A stretch of DNA of 63,823 bases, filler included, from Octopus bimaculoides (lineage: Eukaryota), in assembly GCF_001194135.2 (NCBI RefSeq). It is 6 parts of 6 records of this genome, joined end to end, with 100 filler letters (N's around TTAATTAATTAA, not from the genome) between each part and the next. Parts side by side here need not be neighbours in the genome. Positions count along the whole stretch, not along the records: positions 1 to 15,947 come from NC_068989.1; 5 more parts are not named here. One strand, written 5' to 3'. Every line of letters begins with the position of its first letter. Within the stretch, counting starts at the first letter, position 1. The notes beneath the pieces were generated by a model, which saw only the letters and a list, made by a program, of their open reading frames with translations, was not told the origin of the DNA and made no database searches. Positions 1-15,330 of the stretch are shown piece after piece. Both the position numbers and the translations under genes were made by a program.

Positions 1-104
1 CCTTGGAGCTTCGCGACCAGCTTCATCTTCTTTAGCCATGCGACCACGTCCGTGTCGCCGCAAAACGGTTTAATTATATCACTAGAAATCCGGACTACAC
101 TCAT
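1..104 (-). CDS. N-terminus of retrotransposon Gag (runs off the window)
   Basis: Manual translation from ATG at 104: MSVVRISSDIIKPFCGDTDVVAWLKKMKLVAKLQ, resembling the IKPFxG-DVVAWLKKxKLVAKLQ start of invertebrate Ty3/gypsy Gag; begins 19 nt after the PBS. Confidence 0.7.
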   Translation of the reverse strand, partial: MSVVRISSDIIKPFCGDTDVVAWLKKMKLVAKLQ

Positions 105-122
105 AATTTTTTTTCTTTATGG

Positions 123-134
123 GCCGAAATAGCT
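123..134 (-). promoter_or_regulatory. Non-canonical primer-binding site AGCTATTTCGGC abutting the LTR end
   Basis: Directly follows the LTR CA and lacks the usual TGG. It is the exact complement of GCCGAAATAGCT, recalled as nt 1-12 of metazoan tRNA-Phe(GAA). Confidence 0.65.
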
Positions 135-403
135 TGTGGTGAGATGGAGGAAGAAGACAACAAGAAGCAAAAGGACAGAATGAAACGTTGGACCTTACCT
201 TGTCGACCGCAGCGGAGTACACGATCGCTCCTGATCAGAACACGTCTTTCTCGTAACATCGCTGTTTTCTGACTGGCCCCACGTGTTAGCCTTCGACCGC
301 GTGTCGCCCACTTCCGATCTGACCCTTCCGGTCTGGCTTCACCTCTGTTTGCCTCACCCCTCTCCACCACAACACATAGCTCATCACAGCCCATAACACC
401 ACA
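135..403 (-). mobile_element. 5' LTR (269 bp) of a Ty3/gypsy-like retrotransposon
   Basis: On the minus strand it begins TGTGGTG (403-397) and ends CACCACA (141-135): TG...CA with a perfect 7-bp terminal inverted repeat. Outer flank is (TA)n; inner side leads to a PBS-position sequence and a gag-like ORF. Confidence 0.8.
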
Positions 404-1723: not shown

Positions 1724-2906
1724 TCAGGTCATCCCATAAGTTTTGTCCAATTTTACCTTTCTTTAAAATTGAATGAAATTTAATAGTATTTTAGAATGTC
1801 TAATGGAATTAAAAATTATTTTTATGCATTTGTGTACATTTAAACTAATTAAATATTATTTTACAGAATAATAGAATTGAAATTTCTTTGATTAAAACCC
1901 TTTCTAACATGGAAGTATCCAAAGAGTATTTAAGGTGCATAATGCTTTATGAGTACAAAAAAGGAAACTCTGCAGCCAAAGCAACTCGAAACAGACACTC
2001 AGTTTATGGGAAAGAATGCTTGAATGAAAGAACTTGCACAAGATGGNNNNNNNNNNNNNNNNNNNNNNNNNNNNNNNNNNNNNNNNNNNNNNNNNNNNNN
2101 NNNNNNNNNNNNNNNNNNNNNNNNNNNNNNNNNNNNNNNNNNNNNNNNNNNNNNNNNNNNNNNNNNNNNNNNNNNNNNNNNNNNNNNNNNNNNNNNNNNN
2201 NNNNNNNNNNNNNNNNNNNNNNNNNNNNNNNNNNNNNNNNNNNNNNNNNNNNNNNNNNNNNNNNNNNNNNNNNNNNNNNNNNNNNNNNNNNNNNNNNNNN
2301 NNNNNNNNNNNNNNNNNNNTTAAACGTCGTAAACACTGGCTTGGTAAAAGGGAAGGGAACTTCATGGAAAAAAGGTTCTTCTTTCTATCTGGTGGGATTG
2401 CAAAGGAGTAATTCACTTTTAATTGTTACCACCTAATGCAACAATCAATGCTCAAATCTACTGTCAGAAATTAGAGTGTTTGAACCAAGCTTTGAAGAAA
2501 AAAAGATGCACTTTAGTGAATCGAAAAAAAGGAGTGATGTAACATCAGGACAATGCGCGACCCCACACTGCAAAGATCACATCACAGAAGATCAAAGAGC
2601 TTGGTTAGGAAAAAATTCCTCATCCACCTTACTCCTTCAGACTACCATTTCTTTTGTAGTTTACAGAATCATTTGGGAGACATAACTTTCGCAAGCCAGG
2701 AGGAGATCGAAACTGACATTTCAGAGTTCCTTGCTTTGAAGCCAAAAGAGTTTTACATTGATGGGATTAAAAACCTTGTATATAGATGGAAGGAAGTCAT
2801 AGATAATCAGGGAAAGTACATTGATGATTAAATTTCAATTAAACATAATATTTGATCACTTGTTTTCTTTATTCAAAATTCAGATAGAACTTATGGGATG
2901 ACCTGA
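1724..2906 (+). mobile_element. Decayed mariner DNA transposon with both TIRs
   Basis: Left TIR TCAGGTCATCCCATAAGTT (1724) matches the reverse complement of the right TIR ending at 2906, followed by TA. Transposase relics: MEVSKEYLRCIMLYEYKKGNSAAKATRN..ERTCTRW, HQDNARPH, PHPPYS/SDYHFFCSLQNHL, GIKNLVYRWKEVIDNQGKYIDD; stops, frameshifts and a gap. Confidence 0.92.
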
Positions 2907-3960: not shown

Positions 3961-5914
3961 GCATAAACCTCCCGTCACTACACTGATTCTGCAGAACAGA
4001 GTTGAGTGTGAAAACCAACTTTAAAGTGTAAATATAGATGTTTTTGAATACACACTCATACATACATACGTACAAATACACACATACATACAAATAAACA
4101 CATGCATACAAATATCTGTCAGTCTCTTCCAAATACGATCGACAGTCAAACATTTATTCCCTACAAACTGAATTTTTTTAATCATCTTTCTTAAAACACA
4201 TTTACTTACTACCATATATATATAGAGAGAGACACAGAATGCACATTAATACACGCATATATACAAATATATATATACATACTTAAGAGATTATTTACAT
4301 CTAGAAGATGCTTCTCTTTCATTCAACTCTGTTGAATGCAGTATTACCTAGGAAGATTTGATGTCATCAGACAGTATTCAATGACCATTGTGTTTTGAAC
4401 CTGTACTATAATACCCTCCCATTAGTAGGCCAAAAGTTGTAACCAAATCAATGCTCATTAGCTCCTCCTTACTTCCAGCTNNNNNNNNNNNNNNNNNNNN
4501 NNNNNNNNNNNNNNNNNNNNNNNNNNNNNNNNNNNNNNNNNNNNNNNNNNNNNNNNNNNNNNNNNNNNNNNNNNNNNNNNNNNNNNNNNNNNNNNNNNNN
4601 NNNNNNNNNNNNNNNNNNNNNNNNNNNNNNNNNNNNNNNNNNNNNNNNNNNNNNNNNNNNNNNNNNNNNNNNNNNNNNNNNNNNNNNNNNNNNNNNNNNN
4701 NNNNNNNNNNNNNNNNNNNNNNNNNNNNNNNNNNNNNNNNNNNNNNNNNNNNNNNNNNNNNNNNNNNNNNNNNNNNNNNNNNNNNNNNNNNNNNNNNNNN
4801 NNNNNNNNNNNNNNNNNNNNNNNNNNNNNNNNNNNNNNNNNNNNNNNNNNNNNNNNNNNNNNNNNNNNNNNNNNNNNNNNNNNNNNNNNNNNNNNNNNNN
4901 NNTATATATATGCATGTATGTATATAAATCAGTATATATGTGTTTGCATGTATGTATGTACATATATACAAATATATATATACATACTTAAGAGATTATT
5001 TACATCTAGAAGATGCTTCTCTTTCATTCAACTCTGTTGAATGCAGTATTACCTAGGAAGATTTGATGTCATCAGACAGTATTCAATGACCATTGTGTTT
5101 TGAACCTGTACTATAATACCCTCCCATTAGTAGGCCAAAAGTTGTAACCAAATCAATGCTCATTAGCTCCTCCTTACTTCCAGCTAAATTACTCTCTCTT
5201 GCACTTTGCAAAATCTGGTTCTTTTTGTTGTTTCTCTCATCCTGCACACAGCTACCTTTAACTCTTTTCTCCTTATTCCAGTGTCTGTAAGTATTCCCCA
5301 TACTAACTGGATAAAGAATCCTCTACAGCCAAACTCAACTGGAAATAGCCATACCTGCCATTCTTCTCCCTGTTATCTGCAAATGGTTCAGATACTTTAT
5401 GCACTTCCATTCAGAATCTTGATCATACTATTCTTCCCATAGGTCAGTAATGTTGATCAGGATAATTTTCTTTGCCTTCTCTGACTTCAAAACTAAACCC
5501 ACTCTCAGGTTTGTCTAGATGACCTTAGGAAGTTACAGCTTTTCCTCCTCTAATTTTCAAATCCAGTGATTGAGCTTCTTACAGCAAACTGATTCTTCTT
5601 TTTGCTGTAATCAATAACTTTTCTCCTTCCCTCATGAACTAAATTTATGGTGTTGTTTTCATTGGTTATTTGTGGTTCTTGTGTCTCTCTTGCTCCAGGG
5701 TATGATGTTACCTGCATCTCCTTTACACCTTGACAAGATGTGTAGATAGAGAAGTGAGTGGGTATGTTCACAAGATTGCAAAAAGAGGGAGATGGAGGGG
5801 AGGTGAATGTGGGTAAGGAGAGGGTGTTGGGGAGATGGGATGTGGGGGTAGATTTGTCAGGAACAGATTGTATATGGGAGCATAGACACAAGCACGTGCC
5901 TTTATAGCATTGAT

Positions 5915-7830
5915 CTTACTTAGCTGGATGGGTCTTCTTCAGCACAGCAAATTGCCAGTTGTCTCAATTCATTGTCATCTTCGTGTGAAGCTCATTTGAA
6001 GATCATTTTTGACCACTTCATCTAGTGTCTTCCTCTTCCACAGATTCCCTCCCAATTCAGAGACTGGTACTAATTTATGCAATGGTTTTCATCCACATGC
6101 ATTACATGTTGATACCAGCAGTCTTCTCTTTTGTACACTACATCTAATGCCTCTAATACCCAACTTTTCTCTCAAAATTTTGTCATACAAGCACAGTGAC
6201 ATTGCATATCCAATGGAGTATGTTGGTTTAATTTCTTTCAAGCCTTTGTATGTTCCCTTCATTCATAGCTTGTGTTTCTTTATCATGTAGTATTGCTGTT
6301 GATACACAGGCATCATACAATCTGCCTTTTACTTTGAGGGAGAATCCTTTTGTTACCTACAAAGGTAAAAGCTTTATGAACATTGTCCAGCCAGTTCTTA
6401 TTCTAGCAACTATGCTTTCAGAATATCCTCCTCCACAGCTAATTTGGTCACCTAGGTAATGGTAACTACCTACTGCCTCTAAAAAAAACCCTGGGCATTT
6501 GAGGAAATCTATTTTCTGTGTGTTCTTAGTGCTTACAGTTCCTTCACATCTGCCACATACAAAGACTACTTTCTCTATTAACCTTCCTATGATTCCACTG
6601 TTCTTTTTATATGTCCATAGCTTGCACTGGCTACACTGTATGGAATTTCTACCTACATCCTTTCTACATATTGAGGAGGTTCATTTCCATTAGTAATTTG
6701 ACTGTTTTCTGCTTACTAGGACTTTGGTCTTTGCTAAATTGGCTCTAAGGCCCTTTGATTCAAGTCCTTGCTTCCATACCTGACATTTCTCCTTTAATTC
6801 TATTGGAGATTAAACTATAAGAACAAGGTCATCAGCATAGAGGAGCTTCCAGGGGCAATCCGTTTTAAATTCCTCTGTTATAGCTGGGATGACTGATAAA
6901 CTAGAAGGGACAGAAAACCAATCCTTGGTGAACTCCTACCTGTACACTAAGTTCGTTGCTATACTCATTGCTGACCTTCACCTTGATAACATCATCCCTG
7001 TACATGGCTTGGACAACTCTCACCAGCTTCTCATCTACTCCTAGCTTGTTTATCCATTAACCACCAGATGATGGAGTGAAGGACCCTGTCAGAGGCTTTC
7101 TCCATGTTGACAAATGCCAAGTAGAGTGGTTAAGTTTTGTCTTACTAGGAAGAAAGCATCAGTAGTGCTTCCACAGCACAAAATCAAGCTGCATGACATT
7201 TAGATTAACTCTCTTCCTAATTAGTTGAACTATGACCCTTTCTGTAACTTTCATGACCTGGTCCAGCAATTTGATACCTCTCTAATTATTTCTATCTAAA
7301 GCATCTTCTTTACTTTTGTGGCAGTTGAAAATAATGTTGCTACACCAGTTGTTGGGTATAACAACCTGATTAACTACATGGATGACTAAGTCATATACCA
7401 CTCCACCATATATTTTAAGTATATCAGCGATAAATCCTGATGAACTAGGAGCTTTCCTTGTCTTTCTTCATTGCTTTATCTATCATGCTGCTGTCAACTC
7501 AGATAGCTGAGCCACATTAGGAACACTCTCTCTTTTCTATGCATTCTCCACATTTAGCAGCCTTTCATAGTGGCATTTCCATGCCTCTTTCTTTGCAAGT
7601 TATTTGTAACAGGCTGTTATTTTTATTGCTTTCTGTCCAGACTCCTATCCTAAACTTCACTCATCTGAGAGAGCTAAGCAGATAATTGAAACGTGAGGAT
7701 TTCCATAGTAAATATCCTCCATGAATCTTTATCCTCTGTAATTATCAGAATGATTTCCATAATATCAAATTTTCCTAACCCTCCACATCCTTCACGTGAC
7801 TAAAATCTTCAGATATATAGACAGGTAGCA
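5915..7830 (-). mobile_element. Degenerate RTE-clade LINE (endonuclease end, RT, C-terminus)
   Basis: Minus-strand relics including VGVHQG-L-SPLLFI, EEFKTGCPWKLLYADDLVL, WKQGLESKGLRANLAKTK and C-terminal RKTLDEVV; many stops. Confidence 0.85.
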
Positions 7831-8617
7831 GGACCGGAAAATGAAAAGACAGAGGAAGAGGAGAAAGAAACAGTGTGTGTGTATGAGTGTGCATGAGAGA
7901 AAGAGAGAAAATCAGATAGACAGAGGAATGAAGTAAAGATAGAAGAAAGAGAAAGGAAGATTCATTTCACTGTGTATGTGATAGAGTGAAAGTAAAAAAA
8001 AAGTAGAGGGTGTAAGAAAAAGAGGTTGAGAATGAGACAGAGAGAAAGCATGAGTGAAGGAGTGGGAGAGAGGGATGGAGAATCTATTGACAGTAGCTTG
8101 AAACTTCTTATCTCAGTTCATCATCACACTCTACCTAGCTCCACCCTGCTAACATTAAGTAAAGTAAGTCACCTCTCTTATTCCAGAAGTAACATAATTT
8201 ATCTAACACTTATGGCAGATCACCTTACATATATAGAGTTACAAATAAGGTTATAGACTGATTTGACATCTGCACTGAATGGTATTAGATGAAGCTACTG
8301 ATGATGATGGTAATGATGAAGATGGCTGTAGCAGTGATGATGGTAATGATTGTAGGGGTAAGATGGATGATAGTAATCTGGTAGTAATGAATATAATGCT
8401 AGTGATGGGAGTAGGGTATTTCTGAAAGTAATGTTAATATAAGTGGCAAAATATAGCTGTGATGCTGCTTATGATGAGAATTATTTTAGTTTTGGCAAAA
8501 ATAACACTAGGTAACTGAAAAAAATTGTAAAGAATTTCTGTGCAAAACACAGTAACTGTAAATAAAATTAATAAAATAAAAATAAGTAAATAAAAAATAA
8601 TCAAGTCCAAGACTTAC

Positions 8618-9081
8618 ATCATCACTGTTTTGGAATGAAGAATTTCCATTGAGAGAAAGTTTTCGTGAGCGACAGCATGCCACAGCAGCAATCTTAGCTG
8701 CTGGAGGAGACTTTACTTTTGCCTGACTTTTGTCTGTAGCAGGTAATCCTGAGTTGCCTGTTGATGAATCAGAGACAACAGACGTTGTAGTAGTACTGGT
8801 GGAAGTAAAGGAAGGTGAGGAGGAGGCAATGATGGTAGTAGAATTGGTAATGTCATTAGTAGTGGTAGCAACAGATATAACACCACCACTACTATTATAA
8901 CTATTAGTGTTACTATCTAGAGGTAAGTTATTGCTACTGACAACACTGACTGTGGTAGAAGATGCAGAACTTATTGGCGTTGTAATAGTTGTTATTGTTG
9001 TTCTTGTAGGCTGATTTTCCAGTAAAGGTATCAACTCAGGTTGTAAAACTGTCTCTTCTCCTTCACTGTCTGATGCTGACA
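8618..9081 (-). CDS. Host gene coding exon, Ser/Thr-rich N-terminal-type region; product unidentified
   Basis: 464-nt open exon bounded by a strong acceptor (TTTGTTTTGCAG|TG at 9082/9081) and a consensus donor (GAT|GTAAGT at 8618/8617). Encodes SASDSEGEETVLQPELIPLLENQ...KVKSPPAAKIAAVACCRSRKLSLNGNSSFQNSDD; not a simple repeat. Confidence 0.8.
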
Positions 9082-11175
9082 CTGCAAAACAAAGTTATAC
9101 ATTGTATACAAACAAATTTATGCACACACACACACACACACACACGCGCGCGCGCGTGCACACGCACGCACACACACACACGCTTTCACACACAAACATA
9201 TGGGGAGTAGAGAAAGAAAACAAAGTATTTTTAGTAAATGAAGAAGGAAGAAATAAACTCCTATCTTTAAAATTCAAAGAAAAACTACTTAACCTTTTGG
9301 TTAGCAAATGCAACCTTCACTTCATGAATATAGTTTGAATGTTTTCAGTTGAACATGTATTCCTGCTTTTAAGCAAGACCCTATCTAGCTTACTGTATAT
9401 TTATATCTTAATCTATGTCTTTTACTGCTAATACAATGTTCTCTGCTCCCTTATGCAAGCGGACACTCCCTCGGGGTATACACCAAATTTTGTTTAACTC
9501 TTTCATCATTAGACTAACACTGACCAGGAAATCTGCTGTCTTGATTTTCTTTCCAAATACAAGTATTTTCAACTAAAACTAATTAGTAACAGCTCTAAAT
9601 GTATCATAACTGTTTAATTTTAATGCAAAATAAAATAATTTAGATGGAATAAGGTATATGCAGGTAACTACAGAATAAATATATAAAATCAAACTATTCA
9701 AGACATTTAAATTTGGATAGAATAGCGGTATAGCATGAGTTGAGATTGATATAGACAGATTTTGAATTTAGATATAGTTGACTTTGGTATTTACAAAGTG
9801 TTCTTAATTCCAACAATGAAATAGAAGTTGTATATATACAGTGAAAGAGAGATGTGCTCCACAAAATACTCTCTTAAAGAAAATTCAAACTTTTAATCAT
9901 GTAGATAGTTTAGCATTCTAATAATCTAACCCCTGCGACAGATATTTATACCACTGAATAAGAAATTGATTGATGAGGTGAGTTAATAAGCAAGTTTAAT
10001 ATAAAAATAAATTGTTTTGCTACCTAAATGAAGAAATTTTGGTAAAATATGTTTTCTATGAGCTAAGCTCAATGTCTAATTTCTCCAGAGCCAATTTACA
10101 CCGAGTTATTTGTATTTGATATATTGACCCCCAGTGCTGATCCCAGTAAAACTAACCTCAGAATAGTGAGATTCAAACTTAAGACAACTAAGCCTCTACC
10201 ACTATACTAGATAATGTCACATTAAGTAATCTGCACCGTAATACTTTGAAAGGGGTTATATAATGCAAATATGTTTACTATTTTAATATTGGTTTCTTAA
10301 TTTGACAAAACTTTAAATTTTAATAAATAACCAGAAACAAGATTGTGTAGTATTCACACCAATCTCAAGTATTAGTAACACAACTGAAGCAAAATGCCTT
10401 TGCTTAAATGACATCCATTCGAATATTATAACATTAAATGATAGCAAGTACTAGTTAGCAAGAAGCAATAATAGTTGGCTTCTCTTCAGTTGCTAATGTA
10501 CTTAAGAAACGCAAAAATGTTATGTCTCATTTTCTCAATGTTAAGCTTTGTATCTGAAGAAATCATTACAACAGAACAGAAATTAAAATAAAATGCAATG
10601 TAAAAAATGATTTCCTAATTATATATGTAAATTTGAAGTATACTTCCAAAGGTTACTGGAATCTGTTATATCACTTTTCTTTAGAGATATCCACCAGTAG
10701 CTAATTATTCTCATTAACCTCAGAAGAGTGTTTCAAGACTCTGCCTCATGGTACAATTTTAGTTCAGAACTACAAATTAATGAAAATCCCCAATTAAACT
10801 GCTCCTGTTGATAGTAAGCTGCATCTCCTCATGGTAATGATTTACAGCTAATTAAGTATGTTAGACACATCTACAGCATGAGTTACAAGATTCAAGTTCT
10901 GACCCTAACATTTGGTCAATTTAACCAGATTCAAATTTGAATACCAAAACTAATTTTTGGAATCTGTTACAAGGAGACCATTTAATCATCACATGCTACC
11001 CTGCTTAATACCAATCAGTTATGAAATTGCTACAATCTGATTTTAAGTATATTAGCTGAGACAAGTAGAGTTACAATGTTTGACTTATCAATGCAATTCA
11101 TTGGTAGTTCTACAACCTGAAAATGTGATTCAGAACATTTTAATAACTCAAAACTAAATTACAACTGAAACTTAC

Positions 11176-14439: not shown

Positions 14440-15330
14440 GGAGGGGATATATGAGGAAGCCTTGAACATAGACATAGGCTCCAACCACCCACCAGCAGTC
14501 ATTAAACAACTAGTTAATAATATTAGCAAGTGCATCTCCAATTTATCCACCAATAAAGATACTTTTGAAAAAGCTATCCCATGCTATAATGCTGCATTAG
14601 AAAGGTCCAACTTCAAGAATAGCTTAAACTACATTGAATCAAATACAAATAGACCAAGAAGATGCAGACAGAGGAAACTTTTATGGTTTAACCCATCTTA
14701 TAGCATGAATGTAGGCACTAACATAGCTAGGAAATTCTTGAAATTAATAGACAATCACTTCCCACATTCACACAAGATTTTCAACAGCAATACTGTTAAA
14801 GTTAGTTATAGTTGCTTCCCCAATATAGGGTCAATGATACTCAACCACAATAAAAATAAACACACCAGAGATACCCCAAAAGACAATGCAATTTCAGATC
14901 TCCAAACAGCTGCCCTCTAAACAACAACTGTCACAAAAAAGAACTTGTATATGAGACTAAAATAACGGATCCTAAATGAGTAGCAAAGATGTATATCGGA
15001 ATGATATACACAACGAAAGATACACACAACATTTGGCATCATTCAGAGACACAAATAATAAACACACAACATCCTTCTCCAATATGATATGGACATTGAA
15101 AGAATGTGGAATAAATAACCACCTAAGACCAGAAAATACAGAGGACAGGGCACCAAATATGATCTCTGTATCACTGAAAAACTAAATATCATGCACTCAA
15201 CAGATAACATCCTAAATATTAGGAATGAAATCTTCTCTCCTTGCATATAAAAGCAATATTTCACACTTAAACACTTCAAAGAGAAACCATCACATGTGCC
15301 ACTAATCCCTCCAGTGTAGCCCCTTTCCTG
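14440..15330 (+). mobile_element. Penelope-like element fragment (RT thumb to GIY-YIG)
   Basis: IGSNHPPAVIKQLVNNISKCISNLS, LLWFNPSYSMNVGTNIARKFLKLIDNHFP, NTVKVSYSCFPNIGSMI, RYTQHLASFR..TSFSNMIWTLK. Confidence 0.9.

Follow-up and report, generated by a model that had tools for sequence, protein, structure and literature searches.

A primer-binding site matching the 5' end of tRNA-Phe in an LTR retrotransposon of Octopus bimaculoides and its relatives: a candidate fourth class of minus-strand primer

It is already known that long terminal repeat (LTR) elements start minus-strand DNA synthesis from three types of primer, namely a complete tRNA, a half-tRNA cut in the anticodon stem, or a self-primer (Neumann et al. 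2019, PMC6317226). A review of Candida elements lists only tRNA 3' ends and internal sites of tRNA-Arg or tRNA-iMet (PMC4139406), surveys of GalEa elements and errantiviruses show tRNA 3' ends in use (PMC3587641, PMC13524379), and standard annotation searches only for the last 12 nucleotides (nt) of tRNAs plus CCA (PMC13524379). The subject of this study lies at positions 1 to 403 of a 63,823-nt stretch of Octopus bimaculoides DNA (assembly GCF_001194135.2, six joined parts, the first from NC_068989.1; the whole stretch that was analysed is called the window here). An LTR retrotransposon is represented there by its 5' end, with 5' LTR, primer-binding site and gag start, and the 12 nt that follow the LTR are the exact complement of the first 12 nt of tRNA-Phe(GAA).

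Among the described systems, the Tf1/sushi group (Tf1 and Tf2 of S. pombe, sushi-ichi, plant Tcn1 and TAR) has a site of 11–12 nt abutting the LTR, as this element has, and its primer is the 5'-terminal 11–12 nt of an RNA, whose 3'-OH must be freed by endonucleolytic cleavage where an RNA-RNA duplex ends (primer classes: PMC6317226). Half-tRNA priming (copia, Ty5, Candida Tca2/gamma, plant Osser, Bryco and Bianca) uses a cut 5' piece of a tRNA and not the CCA end (PMC6317226, PMC4139406); the cut falls in the anticodon stem-loop (about nt 39), the site pairs just 5' of it, and the tRNAs concerned are those for iMet, Arg(UCU) and Ile. The canonical systems (retroviruses, Ty1, Ty3, gypsy, GalEa) pair the 3' CCA end of a host tRNA with a site at the U5 edge that is regenerated by copying of the primer, and in them too the tRNA switches between lineages (PMC13524379, PMC3587641).

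The features of the octopus element, in the order of its own reading direction, are as follows.
403 to 135, minus strand: 5' LTR of 269 nt, with inverted termini TGTGGTG (403 to 397) and CACCACA (141 to 135)
134 to 123, minus strand: primer-binding site of 12 nt, AGCTATTTCGGC, exact complement of nt 1–12 of tRNA-Phe(GAA) (GCCGAAATAGCT)
122 to 105, minus strand: A-rich leader of 18 nt with an in-frame TAA, between primer-binding site and Gag start
104 to 1, minus strand: gag start, first 34 codons (MSVVRISSDIIKPFCGDTDVVAWLKKMKLVAKLQ), ATG at 104 to 102, truncated at base 1, where the piece ends

The original prediction, made from this sequence, had described perfect TGTGGTG/CACCACA ends, a 12-mer joined to the LTR without a gap, pairing that stops at the LTR edge and a site free of TGG. 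All of this is found on the minus strand: AGCTATTTCGGC adjoins the LTR end at a distance of 0 nt, and no TGG occurs from the LTR to the gag ATG of the window. The predicted Gag-like ATG is also present, just behind the in-frame TAA, although the spacer before it measures 18 nt and not the 19 nt given; the sequence of this leader is not kept in relatives. The other end of the element lies beyond the piece, which leaves the target-site duplication of this insertion unreadable, and the outer edge of the LTR abuts a TA/TG microsatellite of about 550 nt (404–950) that is host DNA.

In published primer lists, human tRNA-Phe(GAA) begins with GCCGAAATAGCTCAGTTGGGAG (PMC2175372, PMC10505166), and against this sequence the predicted complementarity to nt 1–12 holds at 12 of 12 positions. 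These nucleotides span the acceptor stem on its 5' side, then nt 8–9, and reach three bases into the D stem. The tRNA-Phe of Drosophila and Bombyx presumably starts with the same 12-mer as the human one. The chance that a 12-mer adjoining an LTR equals nt 1–12 of one given tRNA is 4^-12 (6e-8), or about 2e-4 when some 50 tRNAs and any register are allowed. Within the window, GCCGAAATAGCT occurs a single time at 0 mismatches, and the window contains no tRNA gene and no Rfam match.

Relatives of the element were collected by protein similarity. An exhaustive search of 1.8 billion representatives with the 34-residue Gag start gave 38 significant relatives at 55–77% identity, all of them N-termini of CCHC Gag proteins, whose full-length members have 240–260 amino acids with a CCHC knuckle; a word-indexed protein search with the same 34 residues, padded with X, gave no match. 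A Gag profile search yielded 380 Gags and a Pol search 835 Pols, while a scan of JGI metagenomes with the Gag profile returned one locus only and that of IMG/VR none. The named hosts are cephalopods (Acanthosepion pharaonis, Argonauta hians) and crabs (Petrolisthes cinctipes, P. manimaculis), and the other members come mostly from marine metagenomes (TARA included) and SRA assemblies.

The junction between LTR and gag was read in 13 further independent lineages, which with the window make 14; those of their Gags that were compared are 43–62% identical to one another. The end of the LTR and the site that follows it are given for each lineage.
L001 (Acanthosepion), Phe type: ...GCTGCA, then AGCTATTTCGAC, one mismatch
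L002, Phe type: ...TCTACA, then AGCTATTTCGGC
L023 (Argonauta hians, 1440–1490), Phe type: ...GATCAAG, then AGCTATTTCGGC
L024–L028 (Logan contigs), Phe type: ...TCTACA, then AGCTATTTCGGC
L029/L030 (TARA), Phe type: ...ACTACA, then AGCTATTTCGGC
L003, TAG type: ...ATTACA, then AGCTATCTAGGC; the middle triplet is TTA in the sister copy L004
L007 (Petrolisthes), TAG type: ...ACTACA, then AGCTATCTAGGC
L009, TAG type: ...ACTACA, then AGCTATCTAGGC
L010, TAG type: ...ATAACA, then AGTTATCTAGGC, one mismatch (AGTTAT for AGCTAT)
L011–L014 (TARA), TAG type: ...ACCACA, then AGCTATCTAGGC
L005, single lineage: ...ATTACA, then AGCTATCCCGGC
L006, single lineage: ...ACTACA, then AGCTATCGCGGC
L008, single lineage: ...AACACA, then AGCTATCCGGGC

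It can be seen that AGCTAT-NNN-GGC stands directly 3' of the LTR in 13/13 further lineages (with one substitution in two), that the LTR ends in CA in 12 of the 13, the exception being the Argonauta copy with ...CAAG, and that TGG follows the LTR in 0/14. Sister copies with a TGG site, or with a freely varying one, had been named as what would speak against the prediction, and the copies found are of neither kind. Chance is excluded by the recurrence of the site across this set. In an alignment anchored at the junction, information per column was compared between site and flanks: within the site, about 1.9 bit is reached at the nine constant positions and 0.9 bit at the three in the middle, while the 27–30 nt on either side have 0.3–0.45 bit per column and no conserved position, apart from the last three bases of the LTR (ACA, 1.6 bit). 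Conservation thus begins at the LTR edge and ends abruptly after GGC, which is where pairing with nt 1 of the tRNA ends, and variation is limited to the bases opposite tRNA nt 4–6. As these two bounds correspond to the 3' end of a primer and to the run-off of reverse transcriptase (RT) at tRNA nt 1, the block has the shape predicted for a tRNA 5'-end primer. The leader behind it ranges from 5 to 77 nt across relatives.

The primers implied by these sites have the form GCC-NNN-AUAGCU. In six lineages (four of cephalopod type, L024–L028 and L029/L030) NNN is GAA, as in tRNA-Phe, and in five, the crab lineage included, it is UAG, the commonest of the other types; GGG, GCG and CGG occur in one lineage each, and one element of UAG type has a sister copy with UAA. 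In L008 the CGG site, AGCTATCCGGGC, is exactly complementary to nt 1–12 of tRNA-Lys3(UUU) as published for human, the implied primer being GCCCGGAUAGCU. The UAG-type primer GCCTAGATAGCT, followed by CAGTNGG, is present in eight phage contigs of IMG/VR (L015–L022), and in seven of these eight loci it starts a tRNA-Phe(GAA) gene, six times exactly at nt 1 and once with an offset of 1. The gene sequences therefore indicate that GCCTAGATAGCT is a real tRNA-Phe 5' end in nature, the genes being those of phages. The tRNA genes of these phage contigs lie in arrays of up to 24, and their tRNA-Phe begins GCCTAGATAGCTCAGT. A literature look-up of the variant 12-mers GCCTAGATAGCT, GCCGGGATAGCT and GCCGCGATAGCT, as DNA or RNA, gave no tRNA source, with only the Phe and Lys3 strings matched. 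The site types are interspersed on a rough Gag tree, which fits repeated switching of the primer among tRNAs that share G1-C2-C3 and A7 to U12, and the 12-mers change from one tRNA-like 5' end to another while the partner has to come in trans. We take the candidate tRNAs all to have A9 and not G9, so that they would escape m1G9, which blocks pairing; m2G10 does not block it.

Taken together, the sequences suggest that minus-strand synthesis of this family is primed by a 12-nt 5' tRNA fragment, with the site pairing to nt 1–12 of a host tRNA, and we put the probability of this at about 0.7. The 5' end of the tRNA, that is, parts of its acceptor and D stems, would open and pair with the site, the CCHC knuckle of Gag probably acting as chaperone. 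A 3'-OH would then be made after nt 12 (between U12 and C13), either by the RNase H of the element where the RNA-RNA duplex ends or through the use of a ready-made 5' tRNA fragment; a cut by the element's own RNase H, as against a host-made fragment, is suggested by analogy and put forward here tentatively. RT would extend the 12-nt primer into U5 and R, and the plus-strand strong-stop DNA would later copy the primer and run off at the tRNA 5' end, restoring exactly a 12-nt site, so that in this proposal the fixed length of the site would follow from copying that halts at the tRNA 5' end.

Several points weigh against this proposal. Priming from nt 12 is deduced from the geometry of the site, and the cut, the nuclease and the priming itself are inferred. 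Annealing requires the opening of two tRNA stems, and a 12-nt fragment that ends inside the D stem is shorter than the usual class of 5' tRNA-derived fragments (tRFs) cut in the D loop, tRF-5a. Neither the window nor the host loci that were collected contain a tRNA gene, and the sequence known from human and insects is taken to hold for tRNA-Phe of cephalopods. For TAG, TAA, GGG and GCG, four of the six variants, no host tRNA was identified, and if crustacean tRNA-Phe starts GCCGAAA..., as we take it to do in insects, the TAG type of the crabs needs another RNA partner; if the proposal is true, Petrolisthes is expected to have an RNA with GCCUAGAUAGCU at its start or end. The junction of L023 is odd as well, lacking a clean CA and being complementary over 13 nt to tRNA-Phe nt 1–13, and this copy is either decayed or has a shifted LTR end.

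The geometry of the site (11–12 nt, abutting the LTR, no TGG) is also that of Tf1/sushi-type self-priming, in which the transcript of the element supplies the primer itself, its first 11–12 nt pairing back onto the site and then being cleaved off. A weak GTCGAAGGCT similarity in the window LTR, noted earlier as the only trace of such a partner, is indeed weak, since the LTR has no copy of GCCGAAATAGCT on either strand at up to three mismatches. The best complement of the own site in the LTRs (Watson-Crick plus G-U) reaches 9–10 of 12 and is equalled or beaten by 191–497 of 500 shuffles, and in eight loci, among them the complete element L005 and the one-LTR unit of L003, no complement with two or fewer mismatches occurs anywhere. 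Self-priming would moreover permit the site to drift with compensating changes in R, yet it keeps a fixed, tRNA-like sequence in lineages with nothing but the terminal ACA in common at their LTR ends. Self-priming, which the original prediction had itself named among its dangers, has no complement in cis beyond the level of shuffles, and we reject it as very improbable. The site could alternatively pair with another small host RNA (with a 3' end ...GCCNNNAUAGCU), or be a cis signal that resembles box A of a tRNA by accident, serving packaging, dimerisation through the AGCT palindrome or the start of translation, with priming elsewhere or otherwise. The four variants for which no host tRNA was identified leave room for this, as does the very short leader before Gag, into which several signals could be packed. 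However, the LTR edge is by definition the position of the primer 3' end, and the type of boundary seen in the window is fixed in L005 by identical LTRs and a target duplication; two variants equal two different well-known tRNA 5' ends exactly from nt 1, a third equals that of phage tRNA-Phe, conservation halts exactly at tRNA nt 1, and the RNA fold of U5 and site is less stable than shuffles (z = +2.2), with no structure better than chance. We regard this explanation as unlikely, though it is the strongest of the alternatives.

A further possibility is that the tRNA 5' end makes only an auxiliary contact, similar to the additional ones that Ty1, Ty3 or HIV make with a tRNA, and that the true primer is a CCA end paired elsewhere. 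Ty3 and Ty1 are known to contact their tRNAs in a bipartite or extended way, and TGAGCTAT in the window LTR is complementary to nt 7–14 of tRNA-Phe. This second contact proved to be a chance match: TGAGCTAT is absent from the other Phe-type elements, these have no second box in common, and a scan of the whole tRNA-Phe gave no conserved second match to any part of it. As neither TGG nor a 3'-end complement stands next to the LTR in any of the 14 lineages, and a primer located elsewhere would shift the LTR boundary, an auxiliary role is hardly to be expected. It might finally be argued that one 12-mer, noticed while many windows were being scanned, is a coincidence in a single decayed copy; with a prior probability of 6e-8 to 2e-4 and a site that recurs in 13 other lineages, the intact and young L005 included, this is close to negligible.

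When the proposed tRNA 5'-end priming is set beside the known systems, the family lacks the defining feature of each of the three primer classes. The difference from Tf1/sushi is that the partner acts in trans and has the sequence of a tRNA, with a site that stays constant despite unrelated LTR ends. The half-tRNA systems differ in that here the site pairs with nt 1–12 only, the cut would lie in the D stem and the tRNAs are of Phe and Lys(UUU) type; also, plant users of half-tRNAs are all Ty1/copia (PMC6317226), whereas the Pol of this family has the gypsy/retrovirus order. What would be shared with canonical priming is the host tRNA as primer, the place at the U5 edge and the regeneration by copying, while the site is without TGG and would use the opposite end of the tRNA and be limited to 12 nt by the tRNA 5' terminus and not by a modified base such as m1A58. 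By analogy, priming here resembles a trans-acting counterpart of Tf1, and copia in the use of a cleaved 5' piece of tRNA. Tf1's own RNase H is said, from the work of Levin in 1995 and 1996, to cut the 11-nt 5'-terminal RNA primer. The tRF-5a class begins at tRNA nt 1 and ends in the D-arm, a polarity that suits the primer proposed here; its known members are 14–16 nt in length and have roles in silencing or in the control of translation, and we know of no report in which they act as primers of RT.

The original prediction considered that tRNA 5'-end priming could be an undescribed mode. Priming of this kind is supported by the conserved sites, and no description of a primer site complementary to the first 12 nt of a tRNA (5'-end or D-arm priming) was found in the literature, where subscription journals were thinly covered and an older note is possible. 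A paper on Arabidopsis 5' tRFs was set aside as a precedent, as it concerns the canonical 3'-end site. On the sequences at hand we lean towards a fourth primer class for LTR elements, in which the first 12 nt of a host tRNA, cut in the D stem, would serve a widespread and active family of elements in marine invertebrates that has switched repeatedly among tRNAs (Phe, Lys-UUU and others).

If this is true, a fourth source of minus-strand primers is added to the three listed ways, and very short 5' tRNA fragments gain a direct role in the replication of retroelements. It would also link the mechanism of Tf1 (a 5'-terminal 11-nt RNA and an RNase H cut) to tRNA priming, and suggests an evolutionary route between them. 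Standard pipelines would label the whole family as being without a primer-binding site, because they search only for the 3' 12 nt of tRNAs plus CCA. It is known of 3' tRFs that they block LTR elements and do not prime them (PMC7472051), and host defence by 3' tRFs is predicted to be unable to target this family.

The family consists of compact elements of about 4.3 kb, and its contigs cluster at 4.0–4.8 kb. One intact element, L005, and the pol genes of L005 and L003 were annotated as follows (Pfam for the domains, in Pol coordinates).
L005 (locus from ENA assembly ERZ25042219), 4672–8978: intact element of 4,307 nt
L005, 5786–8416: pol, with DUF7047 between RT and RNase H
L003, 133–2349: pol, with DUF7047 between RT and RNase H
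Pol 8–92: gag-asp_proteas
Pol 214–344: RVT_1
Pol 389–445: DUF7047
Pol 489–585: RNase_H/RVT_3
Pol 616–658: Integrase_H2C2
Pol 679–765: rve

The two LTRs of L005 have 300 nt each, are 100% identical (TGTTG...TTACA) and are flanked on both sides by a 5-bp target duplication, CTTTC. The polypurine tract is AGGGGGG, with the junction to the 3' LTR reading ...AGGGGGGCG, then TGTTG; in L003 the corresponding junction is AGGGGGGAG, then TGTTG. Both gag and pol of L005 are open and intact. Given the identical LTRs, the target duplication, the polypurine tract and the open genes, the family is active now or was so recently, the activity of L005 being very recent. Beside L005, at 10245–10774 on the minus strand, lies a gene fragment with RVT_2 (copia-type RT), which belongs to an unrelated second retroelement. 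Contigs with one LTR plus the internal part (4,003–4,215 nt) were seen for L024–L028 from five SRA runs, for L003 and for L029/L030; those of L024–L028 differ from one another by circular permutation, and the contig of L003 is permuted also. Such contigs are either a collapse of two LTRs by the assembler or real one-LTR circles or tandems.

Pfam finds zf-CCHC in the Gag of L005 and L003, and in their Pol the order protease, RVT_1, DUF7047, RNase H, Integrase_H2C2 and rve, i.e., that of gypsy and retroviruses. The RNase H is of PF00075/RVT_3 type, and no Pfam match to RT_RNaseH, the usual gypsy type, was found. The nearest solved structures of Pol are retroviral (integrase of mouse mammary tumour virus at 1e-10, RT of foamy virus and murine leukaemia virus), with no Ty3 among the solved-structure matches at E<0.01. 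The assignment to a gypsy lineage in the original prediction therefore stands for the order protease, RT, RNase H, integrase, but not beyond it, as the nearest solved relatives of Pol are retroviral and not Ty3. The lineage may lie outside the classical Ty3/gypsy clades, and we use "gypsy-order" as a label only. A Copia affiliation, considered on account of the 'IKPF.G....W' start of Gag and the size of about 4.2 kb, is ruled out by the RVT_1 domain and the order RT, RNase H, integrase. A literature search for DUF7047 gave no paper.

Elsewhere in the window, an open reading frame (ORF) of 152 amino acids at 14462–14920 (plus strand) and a Ser/Thr-rich one of 191 amino acids at 8507–9082 (minus strand) have no Pfam match; each may be part of another repeat or of a host exon. 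Two copies of 225 nt, 100% identical, at 4256–4480 and 4961–5185, flank a run of N and are most likely an artefact of assembly around the gap and not a biological repeat. At 1888–2831 (plus strand) there is a remnant of a mariner/Mos1-type DNA transposon, broken by an assembly gap (N at about 2050–2320), in which the N-terminal ORF matches Pfam HTH_48 at 2.2e-13 and the ORF at 2553–2831 resembles the C-terminus of mariner transposase.
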